Source of the DNA: Lepidodermella squamata
Taxonomy: Eukaryota; Animalia; Gastrotricha
Direction: 5' to 3'
NCBI GenBank assembly: GCA_047495785.1
Contig: JBLDXI010000020.1
Location: 3,038,001-3,102,000 of the forward strand
DNA: 64,000 bases
The translations under genes and the position numbers were made by a program. Below, in pieces: positions 51,121 through 64,000 of this stretch. The notes beneath the pieces were generated by a model, which had not been told where the DNA came from, made no database searches, and saw only the letters and a program-made list of their open reading frames with translations. Position 1 is the stretch's first letter, and every line of letters begins with the position of its first letter.

Positions 51121-51907
51121 TCAGACCGCAGTATGGCAAAGCGGGCAATGAACGCAACGGCGAATATCTTGTTCGTAAGCTCGGTGTTTGCAGGTGCCGC
51201 AGACCCAGAACTGGAAATGGTACAGCGGGCGGCCGGAGACAACGCAAACGGGGAATTTTGCGAAACAGCTCGGGCAGCTCGTTGACCAGTCCGGAATTTG
51301 AGCGTCGCAGCTCGGGCAAGCTGCCATAGTAGCTCGCGTGTCTTTCGGCGGGCGACGGACGAAAATTTCAACGGCTAATTCTTCGATTTGTTGCTTATTT
51401 GCCGTAGGCAGCTGGTCGGGGCCGAGAGACTCGAGCCGCAAAAATGCTGCAGAGCAACTGCCATAATTTCGGCTAGCTGCAGCACACAATGCTAAAAAAA
51501 ATAGGCATTAAAATATTTCAATTTCTTTTTGAATTAGCAATTAATTAAAATGTTTGTCAACTAGAAATATTTAAATTTTAAATTTTAATTTTAAAATAAG
51601 AAAATATTATAATTTTTCCATTTTCGACAGAAAATTCCAGTAAAATCAATTCTAGACGCTAGGGCTGCTTACCAACTAGGCTGTAGAGTCTGAATGATCC
51701 AATGAAGTCTTCGTAGTCTCGAAGCAACAAAGCTGTTCGGTGGGCCGCATCGTAATCGCCTTTGTAAAGGTGCCGATGGGCTAAAATCATGAAATGATAC
51801 GCTTCAGCGCCTCGCCACGCGTTATCGATTAACCGCGCATCACCGCCGACTCCGGAAGCCGCCACAGCTGCATCCTCAGCCAATAAACCAGCCAGCGACA
51901 GCGTGGG
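51121..51907 (-). CDS. WDR35: Last two exons of WDR35/IFT121 (51673-51907, 51121-51491); upstream exons not in window
   Basis: LAGLLAED...DNAWRGAEAYHF, YGSCSAAFLRLE and C-terminal zinc fingers FPVCVVSGRPL...CPLCH. Confidence 0.93.
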
Positions 51908-52569
51908 CTGAAATCATAAAAATGTACATATTGGATAAAATTCAATATAAAAATCGAAAATAATTTTTGATATTCAATTGATCGGTGTGACAAGTGAATG
52001 ACCAAAAAATGACTAAATAACAGTTTTATTTGAACGAAACGTGTGATCAGGAAATGCTTTAGAAAACAAATTGTCCCGGCTAATTCCGAATTCAAAGTAC
52101 TCAAACAACAGCTTCAAACCGATTTCACAGCCGAAAGTGTGGCGAAAAAGGCGAAGCAGGCTTGGAAGCAATATGATCCCACTAATTTTAACTACGAAAA
52201 ATTATTGCCTCAATAATGGCTGTGTTTTATTCATCTGACCATGATTTTGTCCTGAAAATTGATCATTTTGGAAATTTGCGTGCAACTCAGGAAAATTTAT
52301 TTTTTCATCAAACGAGGAATTCGACGCTTTTCTTTTTCTTTCGCTTTACAGTAGAAATTATTCCTTCAAAATGTTGTCCGAATGTGTCCTGGGATGTCAA
52401 GTTCCAGTTATACTCTTTCTCCATTTACATTTGCCGATAAATTGACGAAAATTTTTGGAGCTTGTTCTCAAGCTACCTTGAGGTTATTGATACAGCGTGT
52501 CCCAGAATTTGGCAGATTTTGTGGGGAACTAATGAAAATATACCTACTGAGACATTATTCCAGCTTTTA

Positions 52570-52665
52570 GGAATAAAAAATTCACCGGAGAAAAGCCGGA
52601 AACCCCGACGGTAATTATCGGTATTTTACTCGCTCGGGCCAAATTTCTCCGGAATTTTTTATTCC
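52570..52665. repeat. Short inverted repeat / MITE-like hairpin
   Basis: GGAATAAAAAATTC(A)CCGGAGAAA pairs with TTTCTCCGGAATTTTTTATTCC across a spacer of ~50 nt. Confidence 0.6.
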
Positions 52666-53463
52666 ATTAACACGTGACATAGGTACTTGATTACCAATCT
52701 CGCGATTTTTTGAAGTTTTTTGAACTTTGTCTCTAATTTTACAGTTTCTGAATCATTGTCATTGTCCGTGTGTTTTCTTTGATGCGTTACTTATGGGACA
52801 CGCTTTAAAAGGTTCTGCCCTTCACTATAAAAAATTTCGTAATTTAACCGCTAATTAACCGACTTTTACTCGGGCTCCTATTTAGCCTAAAAACTTAAAT
52901 TCAAGCTTCGATTAACCGAAAAATGAAATTCGAGGCGATAATTGCCAAATTTTGGGTAAAAAGTATAAAAAGACCGATTTTCTTAGTCTATCTATTTTTG
53001 AACACCCTAAACTCCATTTTACTTGCCCCATGTTACTCTGTATTGTATGGATAAATAACCCCCGAATTATTCTAAATAGTTTAGCGACTCGAAATGGTTT
53101 CGTATTTTATTCTAAATAACCGGCCGTGCTAACTGCCAAAAGCTAAATAGCGAACTTTCTTTAATGTTTATTTCGGCCCTGGCTCTTATTTCGGCATTTA
53201 CGGTAAACTCTTCATCGAGAGAGATTTGATAAGAGCCATTCAATCACTCTGTTAACACGGCCTGGTCCGGGACCGGAGCGAAAAATGCAACAAGAAAGTC
53301 TACACGGCGGCTGGGATGAGTAAAATGGGATAAGACACATGAGACGTAGAAACTAAAATATAACATATTTTAGTCTGCGATTGAAAGCGCGCGTCTGCAG
53401 AAATATCTGCGATTGAATATTAAATTTTCTGAGATTTGTTAAACATATTATTGAACCGAACAA

Positions 53464-54549
53464 ATGGCGAGCACGACTCTGCAAGCTAAACTGCTTAAAA
53501 TGGCTGAAGACGAGGCAATTTGTGACTTGGTTAAGAAACTCGGATTTTCAGTGGCTTCGATGCTGAGTGACCTGATCTCCATCGAATCTGAAAGGAAAGA
53601 CGAAATAATCACGGTAACCAAACAATATCAACAATTTGTTGACGAAGTCAAAGAAGATACTGCTTATGCGGCTGATAACGTGATCGACTCTGTCAAACAA
53701 GCGTCCTATGAGATCAGGAATGGCGGATGCCTGATCACCGCCGTCCACGAGGCCCTTTCCCAACGGGACAGGGCGAACAACATCGTTATCTCCGGACTGG
53801 AAGCGCCAGACGGTAATACCGTCATAGCCTTATCTGACCTGGTTGCAAATCTCGGCATCCTGAACTTCGACGTCAAAGAACGCATAATACGAACGAACCT
53901 GATCACGAGGGAAAACCAAGATCCTAAAATTATTGTGCAGCTGAAATATGCTTCCGACAAACGTCTGTTTCTCGAAAAAGCCCCCCAGCTTCGCAAAAAA
54001 GCTGGGTGGGAGTCTGTGTTCATTAGCAAGGACCTGACCCCTGCTCAAGCTAAGATCGAGTTTGAAAAACGGGAGCACAACAGACGCCAACGATCGACTG
54101 GTGCGCCGGTAAAGAAAAACCTGGTACCTCCTCAGCCGACATCACCTTAGGAACCTGGCGCCCTGTCCGTTGCTGACAAGAAAAACAGTAATGAAACTAT
54201 TAACTTCCCATGCTACTTAATCAATACTAGACAGCTAACAAATCCGTATAAAGTTTCTCTGTTATTACTCAATCTCCTAACTACAAATGTAATCTTTGCC
54301 TTTATAACTGAAACGTGGTACAATGATGATTTTAATTCTTCCTTCTTCGAAAATAATGGATATAAGGTCCATAGAGCTGACAGAACAGACCGAGAAAGTG
54401 GTGGATCCATGCTACTCATTCACAAATCTTACGAATCCACCCTTGTAGCACAAACCTCGATGGGGGCGCGACTCTGGGAGTTCCGAAGGAACGCCAGTTC
54501 CTTTACACGTGTTTTACACATACGCCGTAGATTACCACGAACGAAGTGA
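53464..54549 (+). mobile_element. CR1/L2-group LINE: intact ORF1 (53464-54150) and 5' part of the APE endonuclease, truncated
   Basis: ORF1 has RANNIVISGL, PKIIVQL and VFISKDLTPAQ. The same frame continues with LINTRQL, ITETWY and YKVHRADR...GGSMLLI. No RT domain in the window. Confidence 0.85.
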
Positions 54550-55286
54550 GATTTCATCCCAACAGGGGGGCCCGAGAACGCGTTGGTTAACAGGACATTC
54601 TCCGATGAAGCCGCCCGATTTATGGTAGTATCCTGGACCCCTCAGGACCTCCCAGAAACTTTTTCAGCTCTAACGGACCTTCCGTTGATTTTCTAGAAAT
54701 TAGGACGGTTTTTTCCTATTTTACCGTATTTTTTGGTCACGTGACCCGGAATGGGTAGTATATGAGGGGACAGTAGGAGGATATGATAAGGACACCAAAA
54801 AACTAACCACGCTAACCAGAGTATCCAAGCCAGCTGACAGGCTGGCCCCTCGCCCCTGGGGGAGAGGGGCCTACAATAAATCAACAATGCTAGCTGGCGA
54901 CCAAAGAGCAAACGACGAAAAGGCAATATACGTATAAGTCAAGGTCAATTGAACAATTCTGCGGCGAATAAATTGTGCATTTTCCATATACAACAATAGG
55001 TTTACATGTAATCGACAACGGAGAATCCGAATATGACGTTCATTTTGTTATGAAGCAATTATAACCCAATGATAGCCCCTCCAACTAATTTTTCTGTTCA
55101 CTGCTATGGAGTTGGCATGGTTATATTTTTTATTAAATAACATAATGCAGTTCAAGTTTCAGGGCTCGAAGTTTTAAAGCACATTTTTAAGTGAGCGGTT
55201 CAATAACGCACTGTCTTATTTCCATATTCATATGCATGCGCAGAAACAAAAAAAAATAATAATAACAATAAAAAATTAAAAGAAAA

Positions 55287-55363
55287 TGTGTCGCGGCCGG
55301 GACTCGAACCCTCCATTAACTGCATTTCACAACGTTACACTGAAACCACTCGGCCACAACACA
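55287..55363 (-). ncRNA. tRNA-like Pol III cassette (A box, B box, T-run); not a canonical tRNA
   Basis: Minus strand: TGGCCGAGTGG (A box), GGTTCGAGTCC (B box), ends pairing as TGTGTTGTGGCCG/CGGCCGCGACACA, followed by TTTT. The anticodon stem does not pair. Confidence 0.6.
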
Positions 55364-56084
55364 TCTGACATATCCATCGCAAATTAAATTTCAATTAAAT
55401 ATTCAACGAAATTATCAAAACAGTTTCCAGCGCCTTCCGGGAATCGGACGCGTCTCTATATAATTTATTCACTATATAATTCGCTACGCAGTGGTTCGGA
55501 AGGCAGTGGTTCGATTGCTGCTCACATCACATTTTTCCTTCTCATTTTTTCTTCTTAAAATCAGATTTATTTCTGTTTAATTTTTTTGCAGAGTGAGCAA
55601 TAAAAAATAAACGTTTACCATTCACGTGAATCTTCATGAGTACAAAGTGCATGCCTGTCATATGGCCGACACGCGATTCAGCATCAGCTGTTTCACGGCG
55701 CAGCGGCGGCAACAGCAAGCAGACGGTTCGATCCGGTATTCAACCATCATTCACAACGATTTATTTCTCTTCAAAACAACCTCTATTTCCCTAATCATTA
55801 GAATTACTTATGCTGCCAGCTCCTATCAATCTATCTTCCGCTCGAATCGATAACATTGTGACAATGTTGCTCTCTCAGGTTTGCTAGTATATTATTCCCA
55901 GTTCATATCACCATTCCCACTATAATTACAGCTACTGGATGAAATGGCGATTTCAACACTGTTGTCCACTTTGGTTTTCCATGGTCACTACTCCCTACCA
56001 GAAAGCGGTGAGTACATTATTTTCCTCATTCATTTTTTTTACTATTGTAAAATTTATTGATTTTTTCATTCATTAACACGTTTT

Positions 56085-58217
56085 TTTTGCTCCCCAATAT
56101 TTTCTTTCGTCGTTATGCTCCCGTATTCGACGTTTTCGCCATCAGCAACGTCGATTCCACTAATTCATGTCATTTAATTTTACCCTGATTTACTTTTTTC
56201 AAGAATTTTTTCAAACTTTGAAATTCCAAACCAAGGTCGTAGGTTGGTGCCCGACCTCTCATTTTTTCGCCCTCAAATATTTTCTTTCATCGATATGCTC
56301 CCGTTCTCGACGTTTTCGCCATCAGCAACGTCGATTCCACTAATTCATGTCAATTAATTTTACCCTGATTTACTTTTTTCAAGAATTTTTTCAAACTTTG
56401 AAATTCCAAACCAAGGTCGTAGGTTGGTGCCCGACCTCTCATTTTTTCGCCCTCAAATATTTTCTTTCATCGATATGCTCCCGTTCTCGACGTTTTCGCC
56501 ATCAGCAACGTCGATTCCACTAATTCATGTCAATTAATTTTACCCTGATTTACTTTTTTCAAGAATTTTTTCAAACTTTGAAATTCCAAACCAAGGTCGT
56601 AGGTTGGTGCCCGACCTCTCATTTTTTCGCCCTCAAATATTTTCTTTCATCGATATGCTCCCGTTCTCGACGTTTTCGCCATCAGCAACGTCGATTCCAC
56701 TAATTCATGTCAATTAATTTTACCCTGATTTACTTTTTTCAAGAATTTTTTCAAACTTTGAAATTCCAAACCAAGGTCGTAGGTTGGTGCCCGACCTCTC
56801 ATTTTTTCGCCCTCAAATATTTTCTTTCATCGATATGCTCCCGTTCTCGACGTTTTCGCCATCAGCAACGTCGATTCCACTAATTCATGTCAATTAATTT
56901 TACCCTGATTTACTTTTTTCAAGAATTTTTTCAAACTTTGAAATTCCAAACCAAGGTCGTAGGTTGGTGCCCGACCTCTCATTTTTTCGCCCTCAAATAT
57001 TTTCTTTCATCGATATGCTCCCGTTCTCGACGTTTTCGCCATCAGCAACGTCGATTCCACTAATTCATGTCAATTAATTTTACCCTGATTTACTTTTTTC
57101 AAGAATTTTTTCTAACTTTGAAATTCCAAACCAAGGTCGTAGGTTGGTGCCCGACCTCTCATTTTTTCGCCCTCAAATATTTTCTTTCATCGATATGCTC
57201 CCGTTCTCGACGTTTTCGCCATCAGCAACGTCGATTCCACTAATTCATGTCAATTAATTTTACCCTGATTTACTTTTTTCAAGAATTTTTTCAAACTTTG
57301 AAATTCCAAACCAAGGTCGTAGGTTGGTGCCCGACCTCTCATTTTTTCGCCCTCAAATATTTTCTTTCATCGATATGCTCCCGTTCTCGACGTTTTCGCC
57401 ATCAGCAACGTCGATTCCACTAATTCATGTCAATTAATTTTACCCTGATTAACTTTTTTCAAGAATTTTTTCAAACTTTGAAATCCCAAACCAAGGTCGT
57501 AGGTTGGTGCCCGACCTCTCATTTTTTCGCCCTCAAATATTTTCTTTCATCGATATGCTCCCGTTCTCGACGTTTTCGCCATCAGCAACGTCGATTCCAC
57601 TAATTCATGTCAATTAATTTTACCCTGATTTACTTTTTTCAAGAATTTTTTCAAACTTTGAAATTCCAAACCAAGGTCGTAGGTTGGTGCCCGACCTCTC
57701 ATTTTTTCGCCCTCAAATATTTTCTTTCATCGATATGCTCCCGTTCTCGACGTTTTCGCCATCAGCAACGTCGATTCCACTAATTCATGTAAATTAATTC
57801 TACCCTGATTTACTTTTTTCAAGAATTTTTTCAAACTTTGAAATCCCAAACCAAGGTCGTAGGTTGGTGCCCGACCTCTCATTTTTTCGCCCTCAAATAT
57901 TTTCTTTCATCGATATGCTCCCGTTCTCGACGTTTTCGCCATCAGCAACGTCGATTCCACTAATTCATGTCAATTAATTTTACCCTGATTTACTTTTTTC
58001 AAGAATTTTTTCAAACTTTGAAATCCCAAACCAAGGTCGTAGGTTGGTGCCCGACCTCTCATTTTTTCGCCCTCAAATATTTTCTTTCATCGATATGCTC
58101 CCGTTCTCGAAGTTTTCGCCATCAGCAACGTCGATTCCACTAATTCATGTCAATTAATTTTACCCTGATTTACTTTTTTCAAGAATTTTTTCAAACTTTG
58201 AAATTCCAAACGAAGGT
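56085..58217. repeat. Tandem array of ~12 near-identical 180-bp units
   Basis: TAATTCATGT recurs at 56161, 56341 ... 58141 with an exact 180-nt period. Only scattered substitutions. Confidence 0.98.
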
Positions 58218-58918
58218 CATTTTTTTGAATTTTAGAATTTCGGAAATTTATATTAGCATTTCATTTTTTTTTATTTTTTCTCTTTTTTACCAGTTTGCGA
58301 ATCGAATGACCGATGTTGCACATGCTGTAATCAAATGGCTGAAAACGATTTCAAGACGAAGTGATTTGTGATTTTTCAAACGTGCTACTTCATTTGAACG
58401 TTGTTTACCAGCTTTGCTGTATGATGCTTTTTAAATTATATTGTTCCAAACCCCATTTTCGCTGACCCAGGCAGTAATAGGGTAGAGATGCCGTCTCAAT
58501 GCCCGGCTATGCAGTTAAATAGCCAACCGACGTTGGAATAGTCGGTATAAACTTCCACCGTCCCGGCTCAGACGGCGAAAACGACCACGTCTTGGTGAGA
58601 CGGTAAAAAAAACTCCGACAAGGCAAGGTCGGTAAAAAACTTCCAAAATGTCCGCAGGGCTGAGCGACCAGCGCCCTCACTGTGATTCGTCACAAATACT
58701 AAGCTGGAAGGGAACCTATGACGATCTGTCAGGCATCTTCGGATCCGAGGTTTCTCCCCGATATTTCAATTATTGATGTGCATTGGTAATTTCAATAAAA
58801 TATGTTTTTCATTTCAATATATTTTTTTTAATTGATGTTCTTCATTCCATTCGCATATGGTGTTATTTTTTATTTATCTAGTTTTATGATGACAATTTTG
58901 TGATTATGAACTGGAATC

Positions 58919-61900
58919 ATGGTGAAACCGCCTAATTGGAAGCCAAAATCGAAGGGATCGCGTAAGTGTTCCTTTTGCAAACGGAAAGGTGTTCGAATCT
59001 CAACCCACTGCGGACTACTCAATTGCTCTAAAGCTAAAGGGCAACACCATCCCAAGCCGTGCATTAAGGTTCAACCTCCACAGTCCGCTTCTCAGTCCAA
59101 TTGTATGTTTTCCTAATCAATCAGTTATATATGTTTCATCTGTTTTTACACAGCCACGTCGTGTTCGCATGTTGGCGAATCTTTATCGGTAGCTCCATCC
59201 TCACTCACTGTTCAGAATACGTCTCAGCAGTCGTTGATATCTCAAGGCTTGTTCTTGTTATTCATCCTCAAATTGTATAAATTTGCGATAAAATTTCCCC
59301 ATAGGTAGCGGCGCTGTTCTGACTGCTTCGGAGCAATTGTTGGATTCTCAAGGTCAGTAATTTTTATTTCTCAACTATAACTTGACATGTGGCTGTGCCG
59401 TTCCAGCTGTTCCGGCTACCCGGGAAGATCCGCTGCCACCTCCGGGTTAGTTGTTAGATTGAGATTTATTTCATGTCTTGAGCGAATACCACTAAGCTCT
59501 TTTAAGAATTATAAGAATTGAAGAGGTGTTAACATATGATTGTTATGTCATTTAGTCTTGTCAAATAATATTTTCAGGCGCTTCTTTGAACGAACGGCAG
59601 GAATCTAGCGCGCCTGCAACACGTCAGCCAGTAACTCAGCCATCTTGTCCAGTATGCGGCGCAAAAGGCAGGAAGTATCTGACCCACTGCGACAATGAGG
59701 AATGCCGGATTAGTGGCCGCGGGCATCACGCTAATCCCTGTTTCCAGTTGGAACGACCCGGGCTACAGGCCGGTGTAAATCTTGAGCAGCAACGTAAGTA
59801 TTATCCACCGGGTAACAACCTTTCATAAATAATGATTCATTTAGCTGTGGCGTCCTCTGGAGCTGTTGCTGCTACGTCACAACGGTCGCTGCCATCTATA
59901 GGTTAGTTATTTAATCAAGAATTGTGCTGCCTGGTGTTAACTAAAACTGCTGTTTGTTGCAGCTAGTGGTGGTTCTTCTAATGCACCTATTCTATGTGAC
60001 AACTGCAGAAGACGATCGGTGCCCTTTTTCGACATCGACATTGCTGTCGTGGAAGAGCCGGTATCTGGACGCAGCTATGGTGCTCTAGGACTAAGGAAAG
60101 TCTATGAAAACTGCTCGTTATGCCGTTGTTGCCGTCACTATTTGCGCAACGGCGATGCTCGTTTTCCCGCCGGATGGCCAGCCCTTGTTTATAGCCTTTT
60201 CTTCAAAGCAGCGAATAGGCACCTAGCAGAGGCCCTCTCTAACTACATATCGCCGCTCATGAAAATGATGTGGAGCGAGGTCGACGGCTCAAATGTTATG
60301 CGGGACTCGCAGCCGTGTTTCGTTGACAAGACACGTGATCTGGCTGATTTCATGGCCAATATCTACAAAGACGCAGGTATTCTATCAACCTACTAAATGA
60401 GTATACGAATGCAGTTTTTTTTTTAATTGCAGGAGGATTCAGTTACGCGCTAAACATGTACCCAGTGCCCGACGTGATATGTCCGCAAGGTTGCCTCGCT
60501 TTCATGGAGAAGTGCCAGCTAATCCCGTACCATCATTTGATCCAACATGTCACTGGCAGCAATTTCTTCGATTCCGACTTGCGCTGGTTCGAGTCAAGGA
60601 GACCCGACTGGCCGTGCAACCCAGTGCCTTTCCTCGCTTGGGATTTCGCTGCTGCAATGGTCATGGACGAGACAAAGGGCCTATGCATCCTTGCCTGCAT
60701 TGACCACAGCAAGCCGGACCTGTTTTCCATGTACCTGCATCTCCCTGCGAATCCCGAGTTCGACCGGTTCCACGATCCGCAGCAGACCGAAATCTATGCA
60801 CCCGTGCACGTGCAGCCCAATTTCGTCAGAGGCGGGCGAGTCGGTCAGTCGAACGCATCAGTGCCAGTGACAAAAACTCTGGGTGATCAATTAGGTGTCG
60901 GCAGCTTTACATTGCGTGGTGCTCACTCGGCAAATCGCAAGGCTTTGAGCATGTACGCCAGCGCCTTTAAGCCACACCTTTTGGCCTTGCGATATCGTCC
61001 TGAGATTCGCAACACCGCGATCAGCAGATTTGGCGAGGAACACGTGGCTCACGTTCTTGCTGATTTTGATCAGCATTGCCCAACTGCTGTCGTGAGAAAC
61101 CATGTCAAGGGTGGCACTTTCATCGAGCTAGCTGACTGTTACTTCACCTGGGCTATTCGCCGCAAAATCGCGACAGGTCAGTACATTTCATTCTTAATCT
61201 ACTACTATAGATTAGACTCAACAGAATTAGCACTGCATTAATTTTGCTGATAGTGATAGCCTTGTAATCGGGCCCTGCACTGAATTTTAGATGCGTTTTG
61301 TCCAATATAAAATTCTCCAATATAAATGGTCAAAGAACGGATGTAGCAACTGTAGTAGAGTATCGCGCGGGATAACCACTGCAAATTATTATGTAGTGTA
61401 CTTCGGGAGGATAAGATTAGGCCGATCGAACTGCTCCAAATTCTCGATATAATAAACAAATATAGAGATACTAAGATTCAAGCGCATTAACAATTCATCA
61501 TCGATTCCTACGAATTGTCTCATTTCGTCCTTCTTTATTTTAGGAAGTGATTCGTCGAAAAAAGGGAAAACACCTTCAGAAGCCGTGATCTTCAATCCGG
61601 TTCACCCGAACGATGATCATGGCTTAATCCCCTGGGCGTTCAAGTCGGGTCAAGGCGACAACCCTAGTCAGCTCCTGACACTGGTTGCCAACGTCGTTTC
61701 GTTGTGCCGCCCTGTGTACCGTGCGGCGTTGAGTCATCTAGTGCTTGGCAGTCCCGATTTAACACGCGTCGACATCGGTGACTTGCTCAGTCATACTGTT
61801 TCGCTGCCGCGCCCGAAAACCCCTCGTACTCTGAATTTGTCGCATCTGGCAAGGGACTTCTGGTCACTGACAGAACCCGAAAGTGATAGCGGATCTGACG

Positions 61901-64000
61901 ATGACGAAGAATCCCCCGATGTCGTTACGCGGGCATTAACTTTGATTGGGAGAGTTACTGCGCCGATTAATGATGTCGAGTTGTCGTTTGCTGGATCTCA
62001 TCTTTTAGCGATAAGAAAGGGGCAAACCATGGACGGCGAAAGAAGGAGTCTCCGAAGTCATGGTGAGTGTTTTATTCATATTTTGGCAATTATTGCTGCA
62101 TTATTAGACGTTGTGGTGATACATATCATGATCTTGGGTCCTGAATTTCAAAATTTACTGGTTTTAATCAAAAATTGAAACAACAAAAAATTGAGGGCTC
62201 CCATTCAAGTTATAATGACGTAAATCTTGAAATATTGAGTAATTTTCAAATCGTTTGATTCATACCTAGATAACCCTTGTTTATTTCGTGTTGACAGTGG
62301 GTAGGGTGCTGGTCATCCACGGAGGTCAATCTCAGCTGCTGACCGAATACCAGACTTCGCATGAGCTGCTGATGTGCCGACCCGAAGGTGCCTTGCCGAT
62401 CAATTGGCCCGCATTGCCCTTGTCGCTGAAAGCTGGTCATCACCTGCTACTTGCCCGCGTCAAGTTTGGCTCGAAATCCTACATCGTTTTTCGATGGTCG
62501 CCTAGCTTCAGTGGCTGGTGGACAGTAGAGCCTAGCGGGCGAGTGGTTCGTGGTGTCAGTGATCAGCACATGCGCTCTGACGTCCAATTTGCGATTTACG
62601 CTCTGCCTGGCAACCAGACGTTCTGCAATCAAGCCGTCCGTCAATCGCTCGGTGGTCAAAGCAAGGCTGCCTGCGAAATGCATTTCGACTCTGTCGAGTT
62701 CAACTTCACTCTTATGAAAGTGCCGGTGAAACATAAGGTGAAGTGTTGCATGCGATCACCGGGAAGAGCCAATCAATGCGGCAAACCTGCTCAGTTGCGC
62801 TGTCCTGCGGGCTTGCAGAATGGCAGCTTGTCGTGCAGTGTCGGCATCTGCACGCGGTGCTTCAAGAAGCTTCCAGCGGACGGTATCACCAAGCTCTCAG
62901 CGCCTGACTTTCTGCCTGATGTGCCTGAAGATGCTGAATTGCAACTGTCAGCTAGCAGGGCATCGAACTTGGAAGCTCAAGCCGACGAGGTTCCGCCGCA
63001 GCCTGAGCAGCTTCATTTGGCTACTGATATTCAATTTCCTCGAGGCGATGCTGAGCCGCTGTATGATCCGACCAAGGGTATTCTCGCCAAGTATCTCTGG
63101 CAGCACTTGGGAATTCTGCAGCGAACCAGGCTCGCTTTCGATTCTGCCCAGAAGTCTTTTCTACTGCAGCAGATGGTTGCCTTCGGAGATGCCCCTGCTA
63201 CTTCCATCTTGTACCCGGAGGGTGCTCTGTTTCCGTCACTTTTCTATTGCCAACGTGATGGCAGTGTTGTTGGTGCTTTGCCTCACCATCACTACTCGTC
63301 CTACAACTCCGACTATACAGGTGGAATCGGCTCCCTGTCTGATCATGTCAAAGTCAGGTTGCGCAACTTCTTCTTGGCAACAAGCTGGTCGTTTGCGTCA
63401 ATCTACTTCTCCTTTGACATGAAGCTATCGGCGCAGCTGAACAAAAACAGCACTGCAATCTTCATGAAGCGTGGGACAGAAGGCCTGGCAGGTAAAGGCG
63501 CTGTTGGCTGGTCTCCTCCTGGCACGGCTCTCGAATACGAGGAGTTCGACAAGGAGTCGAGGCTGAAAGAGCTTGGCGCCCTAATCAAGCATGAAGAATG
63601 GAAGTGGTTCGGGACAATTACTTGTAATGATACAGGTTAGCACAAGTTTTGGTATTCAATCTCACTCAATTGTAGACTGAATAATTTCTCCAAGAATTGT
63701 TTGAAATTTGAAATTTTACCACCTCGACCTACACAATGCATTATTTTTCAATTCCAGGCACACCTGGTGTATGTGAAATCGTCAAAGCCCTTATGATAAA
63801 CGCTCAAAGGCACCATGGTCCACGCCCTGTTCTGTCGAAGGCCGACTATCAGCGAACTTTTCGTCAGCGTCTGCTCCTTGTTTCAAGGCTTGACGAGACC
63901 GAGTACAAGCGGCTGTACTACGCCCATTTCATCCTCATCAGCATGGCTTGGCAACGAGTGCAGGAGCATCTGATCGAGTTCCTGAAGCGCACGAATGTTG
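58919..64000 (+). CDS. Putative Helitron-like Rep(-helicase) gene, 5' part (exons 58919-59102, 59154-59246, 59305-59352, 59407-59445, 59578-59793, 59845-59901, 59963-60376, 60433-61176, 61544-62062, 62298-63635, 63758->64000)
   Basis: Exons splice into one open frame. Several Cys/His clusters, LYPEGALFPSLFY, and WFGTITCN...EI resembling Helitron Rep motif 1 (F-x-T-x-T-C-N). HUH motif not reached within the window. Confidence 0.65.

Follow-up and report, generated by a model that had tools for sequence, protein, structure and literature searches.

The probable left part of a giant Helitron-like transposon with a conserved N-terminal module in the gastrotrich Lepidodermella squamata

We analysed a stretch of 64,000 nucleotides from the genome of the gastrotrich Lepidodermella squamata (contig JBLDXI010000020.1, positions 3,038,001 to 3,102,000; hereafter the window), whose right-hand end carries a gene for a Helitron-like rolling-circle transposase. 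Positions 54842-64000 very probably represent the left 9.2 kb of a giant autonomous RepHel transposon, inserted in an intron of WDR35 and belonging to a clade whose proteins combine an N-terminal module, an HUH Rep, a Pif1 helicase and a GIY-YIG nuclease, in that order. This reading is based on homology to RepHel proteins, on domain order, on a sharp left end that bears a hairpin, and on evidence that the 5′ region has multiplied recently. Within a known kind of transposon, the locus represents another copy of a variant that has hardly been described. Three findings are new: the long front end of the protein is a conserved and structured module of the clade rather than junk or captured sequence, one domain within it has no match among solved structures, and the left end of the family can be placed at position 54842.

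A rolling-circle transposase and its relatives

An initial annotation of this DNA had described a Helitron-like gene in which the sequence WFGTITCN serves as Rep motif 1. Sequence comparison confirms that the gene encodes a Helitron-like (RepHel) rolling-circle transposase with this motif, the supporting observations being the corresponding motif column of its relatives, the presence of Helitron_like_N in those relatives, and a profile match to Helraiser. A phmmer search with exon 9 of the gene against 1.84 billion representative proteins returned 283 proteins with E values below 1e-3, of which 78 fell below 1e-10; many members of the whole set are 2,000-2,800 amino acids long and are matched at residues 850-1,500. 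Named relatives come from Cyprideis torosa, Myxine glutinosa and Styela clava, and several of the metagenome proteins are labelled 'predicted GIY-YIG superfamily endonuclease'.

Among four relatives searched with Pfam, Helitron_like_N was found in three, PIF1 in three (P0010, P0013 and P0040 in our numbering) and GIY-YIG in two. Every one of 24 Rep regions taken from relatives matched Helitron_like_N (best E 3.6e-10), as did 4 of 34 pieces preceding the motif. The C-termini of the long relatives carry GIY-YIG in 17 of 22 cases, and an apurinic/apyrimidinic (AP) endonuclease (Exo_endo_phos) in none of the 22. In MAFFT alignments, WFGTITCN is aligned with the column that reads W.YF.TLTCND in 25 relatives, and exon 10 continues the conserved stretch R.W.R...F..YL. 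Farther downstream the relatives have R.EFQ...GN.PH.H and then, about 170 residues on, SY..KY; together with Pif1, this is exactly the set of motifs (E-x-Q...H-x-H, Y-x-x-K-Y, Pif1) that the initial annotation had named for such a gene.

When the Rep profile of the clade was compared with the sequences of the PDB, Helraiser (7LCC, E 0.0036) was the sole meaningful match to a solved structure; the other five hits listed have E values of 0.27-0.93, are mostly antibody light chains, and look like chance. The profile aligns with Helraiser residues 517-612, which include motif 1 and HUH, and with residues 697-748, which include the tyrosine pair, and the column of WFGTITCN is aligned with LFITMTCN of Helraiser. 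A tblastn search against phages gave no match.

Exon structure of the gene

Consecutive open reading frames (ORFs) of 65, 80, 125, 261, 197 and 450 amino acids lie on the plus strand between 58919 and 63640, the last ending in WFGTITCNDTG, and GC content climbs from about 0.38 to 0.47-0.53 over them. An exon model was built with a splice-site dynamic programme and corrected by hand and inspection. It has 10 exons in the window (58919-64000) instead of the 11 first proposed, and every intron is of the GT-AG type, with lengths of 51-367 nt. The spliced frame is without stops for 1,267 codons, 1,176 of which precede WFGTITCN, and the earlier figure of about 1,200 was thus essentially right. Overall the encoded protein contains 3.2% Cys and 3.6% His, gathered in clusters.

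Exon 1 (58919-59102; all exons are on the plus strand) has the ATG, a basic stretch and a first zinc knuckle of the form CX2CX10HCX4CX7HHX3C, and exon 4 (59578-59793) has a second knuckle with the same spacing of eight ligands; both were defined from their ORFs and the splice model. Between them lie two small putative exons, exon 2 (59305-59352) and exon 3 (59407-59445), placed by splice signals and frame. The putative exon 5 (59845-59901, 57 nt) is optional: it has a good acceptor and donor and keeps the frame, and it was omitted by the splice programme. Exon 6 (59963-60376) encodes conserved block A, with a CxxC...LCxxC zinc ribbon and a WP motif, as established by blastx and blastp matches to relatives and by an alignment of the clade (A2). 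Exon 7 (60433-61176) encodes block B (CPxGC, C..H, H.P.NP), which is collinear with relatives. The 56-nt intron that separates exons 6 and 7 is supported by the spliced product, whose 386 residues align end to end with residues 508-879 of P0010, 168-545 of P0013 and 348-663 of P0015.

Splice signals and frame define exon 8 (61544-62062), a variable and partly acidic linker of low complexity. Exon 9 (62298-63635), characterized by phmmer, by a second alignment (A1) and by fold searches, encodes block C, which comprises a sheet resembling the palm of USP proteases, a Cys/His cluster, a helical pre-Rep region and Rep motif 1 itself (63606-63629). Exon 10 (63758-64000) runs off the window and covers part of the Rep region between motif 1 and HUH. 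The splice programme had called an additional intron at 62738-62818, which we rejected because it would delete C149 and C168, two cysteines that are invariant in 34 relatives; exon 9 is therefore treated as continuous.

The metagenome relatives P0005, P0010 and P0154 appear to be uninterrupted single ORFs (for example, 1,797 amino acids on a contig of 5,755 nt). The L. squamata copy has nine introns in the first half of the gene, some of just 51-61 nt, which makes it a possible case of intron gain in a transposase that may be worth attention.

It is possible that this copy is dead or rearranged, with an intact part in the window and a gene that is broken or truncated farther on, such that the element would not be autonomous. 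The remainder of the gene does lie past the window. However, neither stops nor frameshifts occur in 1,267 codons, and the near-identity of the 5′ region among copies (see below) indicates recent activity, and we consider a dead copy unlikely.

Composition of the N-terminal module

The long N-terminus had been described as an atypical module of a divergent lineage; our comparisons do not bear out that it is atypical for its lineage. Full-length relatives from a hagfish, a tunicate and many environmental (metagenome) contigs have motif 1 at residues 854-1,472 and share the same conserved blocks, with blocks A, B and C collinear in blastx and blastp comparisons. Because both the blocks and the length are shared by the long relatives, a long N-terminus is the norm for the clade, and the lineage is old and widespread. 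Moreover, the last ~110 residues before motif 1 belong to Helitron_like_N, and Helraiser itself has about 520 residues in this position.

The head of the protein (exons 1-5, about 180 residues) consists of the basic stretch and the two CX2CX10HCX4CX7HHX3C motifs, and this knuckle was found in none of 158 relatives. P0015 and P0032 likewise open with a basic stretch and a CCHC knuckle, and P0097 has a run of CCHC knuckles. An OTU-type stretch is present in the heads of P0010, P0015, P0046, P0057 and P0094, and the L. squamata gene has no OTU. Judging from these sequences, the head is a variable accessory region, and the two-knuckle version appears specific to this lineage. The Myxine glutinosa protein P0013 opens differently, its residues 1-160 forming a His-rich tandem peptide repeat (HVLTHVREVEQHIAQVPTHGDPT, about seven units, 15.6% His) that is unlike the other heads.

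Blocks A and B (exons 6-7, 386 residues) are conserved throughout the clade, with near-invariant CxxC...LCxxC, W, CPxGC and C..H elements in alignment A2, and in many relatives they start 10-80 residues from the N-terminus. An AlphaFold prediction from this alignment (first row P0010:500-885) reached a predicted local distance difference test (pLDDT) score of 88.6 and a predicted template modelling (pTM) score of 0.82. The initial annotation had suggested structure searches for each domain. For the A+B model these returned nothing credible: the best Foldseek match in the PDB had an E of 5.7, the best VIA match among 48,161 chains had a Z of 5.5 at a root-mean-square deviation (rmsd) of 8.8, template modelling (TM) scores in the ESM Atlas were at most 0.28, and the best match to the viral models of BFVD, also with Foldseek, had an E of 1.3. 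According to the model, then, A+B is a conserved zinc-rich domain of 386 residues that is confidently predicted and matches no solved fold. The 173-residue linker that follows (exon 8) does not resemble the corresponding part of the relatives, a variable stretch of about 200 residues.

For exon 9 the same kind of search gave a weak resemblance. The model has a beta sheet at residues 5-106, and the nearest structures are almost all USP-fold deubiquitinases, including USP7 (residues 361-526), USP28, USP18, USP16, Ubp8, CYLD and the coronavirus PLpro. The scores (Z 6.0-7.1 at an rmsd of 3.3-4.2 over 86-94 residues) are in a Z range that is middling for the tool, Foldseek E values are 0.013 or weaker, and several atlas rows for the exon 9 model carry UCH families. 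The sheet does not have the full thumb-fingers-palm fold of a USP with catalytic Cys, His and Asp/Asn: about 88 residues overlay the palm, A1 shows no conserved His or Asp in this part, and no UCH family was matched by sequence in Pfam. At most, the model suggests a non-catalytic remnant resembling a USP palm.

Residues ~110-205 of exon 9 form the Cys/His cluster, in which C125, H128, C149, C168, C179 and C184 are invariant among the 34 members of A1. Residues ~270-445 (LLYPEA.LFP.IFW ... W.YF.T.TCND) are the best-conserved part and are helical, and this pre-Rep segment overlaps the first ~110 positions of the Pfam family Helitron_like_N. The A1 profile had no match among PDB sequences, and a feature-based search of the ESM Atlas with exon 9 gave nothing usable.

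The left end and the 5′ non-coding region

Copy depth was determined by aligning the Logan contigs of one public run that contains this DNA to positions 52000-56080. Contigs of unique DNA have a depth of about 48 (52356-53427). One contig, of depth 321, terminates precisely at 54842; it spans 54842-55216 and has one difference from the window. Contigs of depth 311 and 298 span 55417-55662 and 55714-56080, both with zero differences. Compared with the depth of unique DNA, these values indicate that the 5′ region exists in about 6-7 near-identical copies, as a repeat that begins at 54842. Given this number of copies, which differ at 0-1 positions per 250-375 nt, the transposon family, as measured on its 5′ region, is young in the L. 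squamata genome and has been recently active.

Non-coding DNA of 4.1 kb (54842-58918, plus strand; contig depth 298-321) precedes the gene. At the left end, within 54842-54871, is a terminal G+C hairpin (54844-54871, stem GGCCCCTC/GAGGGGCC) that begins two bases into the element and folds as DNA with -13.2 kcal/mol (z -3.3); an inverted-repeat search with a 9-nt seed overlooked its 8-bp stem. A degenerate tRNA-like sequence lies on the minus strand at 55288-55360. ARAGORN called it at its 80% threshold only, and neither ARAGORN at default settings nor Rfam reported anything in 50-64 kb. Inside the element, at 56082-58218, Tandem Repeats Finder identified an array of 11.9 copies of a 180-bp unit with 98% matches, which has a strong skew of C over G and of T over A.

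In the initial annotation the element was a young one starting at 54844, with a hairpin, a tRNA-like cassette and a satellite upstream of the gene. The proposed start is within 2 nt of the boundary defined by the contigs, and the youth of the family, the hairpin and the satellite have all been borne out. The tRNA-like cassette stands only insofar as the relaxed ARAGORN call does.

The element opens with CTGGCC after ...ACAGG; it thus starts with C and is flanked by G, on a boundary that is good to a few bases. There is no TC here, and hence the start of canonical Helitrons (HLE1), which begin with 5′-TC and insert between A and T, is not seen. Elements of the HLE2 group insert between T and T and have short terminal inverted repeats; for this element, of which the left end alone lies within the window, the corresponding left positions are G and C. 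The word CTNGAT was also considered as a target and was rejected, since the six bases preceding 54842 are GACAGG.

Single contigs of low depth (36-40) link position 55358 to 55545, 55792 to 55873 and 55923 to 56061, and another turns back, leading from 56045 to 55756. In some copies, parts of the 5′ region have therefore been deleted or rearranged.

Three separate contigs over 54842-56080 with equal depth (298-321) and 0-1 differences are what a single unit would produce, and adjacency and equal depth across this interval suggest one element that comprises both the 5′ region and the gene. Alternatively, the 4 kb upstream of the ATG could be an accumulation of unrelated repeats, with the true left end nearer the gene, for example after the satellite. 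Such an arrangement could be accommodated inasmuch as adjacency is the sole tie between 54842-58218 and the gene, parts of 55358-56061 are skipped or rearranged in some contigs, and the right end, with which any terminal inverted repeat would be formed, is outside the window. Nevertheless, a satellite within the element is no anomaly, as satellite-like tandem arrays are known in Helentron-type elements (PMC7492417), and with the uniform contig depth this makes a pile of unrelated repeats quite improbable.

The host intron and its other repeats

The last exons of WDR35 (IFT121) are on the minus strand at 51121-51489 (Zf_2nd_IFT121, E 3e-19) and 51659-51883 (TPR_IFT121, E 5e-19; both Pfam). With these exons at 51.1-51.9 kb, the higher coordinates represent an upstream intron of WDR35, and the Helitron-like gene lies within it in antisense orientation, with other repeats around it. 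In a comparison of the window with itself, no part of 52.4-64 kb had a second copy.

These surroundings bear on the possibility that the gene is a domesticated, single-copy host gene, derived from a Helitron-like transposase and serving a cellular function. A frame that is open for 1,267 codons with clean introns would be expected of such a gene, the Myxine and Styela relatives are annotated as ordinary 'uncharacterized protein' genes, and our copy number refers to the 5′ region only. However, the sequence directly upstream of the gene, from 54842 onward, exists in some 6-7 near-identical copies, and its abrupt repeat boundary lies within a cut long interspersed nuclear element (LINE). In addition, the gene is antisense in an intron of WDR35 amid other repeats, and domestication is highly improbable on these grounds.

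The LINE is represented by its 5′ part on the plus strand (53432-54461), which includes ORF1 (231 amino acids, 53455-54147) and the start of ORF2 (54151-54546). Its contig, of depth 276, diverges from the window past 54461 and continues for 606 nt that are unlike it; the break in this copy of the LINE is thus placed at 54461/54462, in agreement with the initial annotation, which had it breaking off in its endonuclease. The likeness of the ORF2 piece to an Exo_endo_phos endonuclease comes from atlas features only (score 0.94, 37/40 hits); Pfam gave no match, and a PDB sequence search gave chance-level hits only (best E 0.23, unrelated enzymes). The LINE family is about six copies deep, with 99.2% identity to its contig, and the 231-residue ORF1 belongs to no Pfam family.

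The interval from the LINE break to the start of the element is occupied by an older repeat of higher copy number (54462-54841; contig depth ~770-1400, about nine differences from the window). Just ahead of the 5′ end of the LINE, contig depths add up to 65,114 in a bin of 137 nt (53370-53506), by far the maximum of the stretch, and this bin contains some very high-copy short sequence. A small high-copy repeat is found at 52548-52684 (and 52822-53232), where one bin has a depth of 2,606 with many loose ends; at 52548-52684 it looks like a miniature inverted-repeat transposable element or a short interspersed nuclear element. Around 52653-52783, several contigs skip 90-130 nt.

Discussion

Several points weigh against our reading of 54842-64000 as the left part of an autonomous RepHel transposon. 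The window ends inside the gene, whose HUH, two-tyrosine (Y2), Pif1 and GIY-YIG segments would be encoded past base 64000. The ORF pieces within the window, which end at motif 1, match no Pfam family above threshold and have a weak hit to DUF7478 only. Exons 1-5 and 8 are placed by splice signals and frame only. The 5′ region is linked to the gene by adjacency only, and the copy number is that of the 5′ region. Finally, a left end of CTGG after G does not obey the TC rule of HLE1 and, as far as the left side shows, departs from the HLE2 rule of insertion between T and T. As set out above, we nevertheless regard the transposon as very probable in view of its homology, domain order, left end and copies.

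In such an element, the terminal hairpin would be followed by the tRNA-like piece, the 180-bp array and then the spliced transposase gene. The 1,176 residues ahead of the motif would be organized as a two-knuckle head, the A+B zinc domain, a linker, the palm-like sheet, the Cys/His cluster and the helical pre-Rep region. Helraiser nicks single-stranded DNA by means of its HUH motif and two tyrosines, and it can neither bind nor cut DNA without its first 489 residues (PMC4778049). By analogy, the zinc-rich module described here most likely recognizes and holds the ends of the element for the HUH nuclease, with the terminal hairpin as a possible target. The knuckle head might add contacts to nucleic acid or for nuclear import, and the GIY-YIG nuclease of the clade may stand in for the AP endonuclease of Helentrons.

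A bolder proposal is that elements with Rep, Pif1 and GIY-YIG constitute a third major group beside HLE1 and HLE2, defined by an N-terminal module of about 1,000 residues, in which A+B is a new fold that reads the ends and the 5′ hairpin is its substrate. We consider this tentative and somewhat unlikely.

Taken alone, the locus is ordinary, being one more copy of a giant and recently active Helitron-like family. If the module does read transposon ends, this would account for the differences between the ends of these elements and the ends of Helitrons or Helentrons, and the module would become a means of classifying and annotating the clade. Current tools rely on Helitron_like_N, which is weak on these relatives, and on DUF6570, which does not score on them. 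A left end placed to the base and an internal satellite are also useful for annotating the L. squamata genome.

Comparison with known systems

With Helraiser and canonical Helitrons (HLE1; 7LCC; PMC4778049) the clade shares the alignable Rep motif 1, HUH and two-tyrosine motif, a pre-Rep stretch within Helitron_like_N, and, in the relatives, a Pif1-type helicase that follows Rep. Helraiser also has an N-terminal domain bearing a zinc finger that is needed for binding and cutting single-stranded DNA (PMC4778049). However, it has about 520 residues ahead of motif 1 versus 1,176 in the present gene, and neither the N-terminal profiles of the clade nor the models had any similarity to 7LCC. Also unlike HLE1, the left end of this element is CTGG with a hairpin rather than TC, and the relatives add GIY-YIG at the C-terminus.

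Elements of the HLE2, Helentron and Helitron2 type have large RepHel proteins with OTU, UCH or Herpes_teg_N-type domains upstream and a nuclease downstream (PMC11417382). The present element resembles them in its large multi-domain RepHel protein, with accessory domains upstream and, in the clade, a nuclease downstream, and in its internal tandem array. A stem-loop at the 5′ end, as in this element, has been described for 'HLE2-reverse' and proto-Helentron forms (PMC11417382). The differences are that the 22 C-termini of relatives include 17 with GIY-YIG and none with an AP endonuclease, and that the left flank here is G and not T. DUF6570 has been proposed as an HLE2 marker upstream of Rep in the HELIANO paper (PMC11417382), yet at E values up to 0.5-1 it was detected neither in the ORFs of the window nor in the N-termini of eight relatives nor in the 34 members of A1. 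A distant kinship of blocks A and B with DUF6570 may nonetheless exist, the comparison being a direct Pfam search only.

The sole published mention of GIY-YIG in a Helitron-like element that we found is HelenSM92 of Sphagnum, an HLE2 family in which the domain is described as captured, in one plant family (PMC11417382). Compared by description, the clade differs in that GIY-YIG is the regular C-terminus of the whole group, which comprises mostly animals and environmental contigs. Replitrons have Rep without a helicase, whereas the relatives that share both the N-terminus and Rep with the present gene carry Pif1. The closest likeness is to P0010 from a metagenome, P0015 from Styela clava (XP_039257388.1) and P0013 from Myxine glutinosa. 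Their identity to the L. squamata gene is at most 38%, but all three have A, B, C, Rep and Pif1 in the same order, and P0010 and P0015 end in GIY-YIG, following the pattern of the clade.

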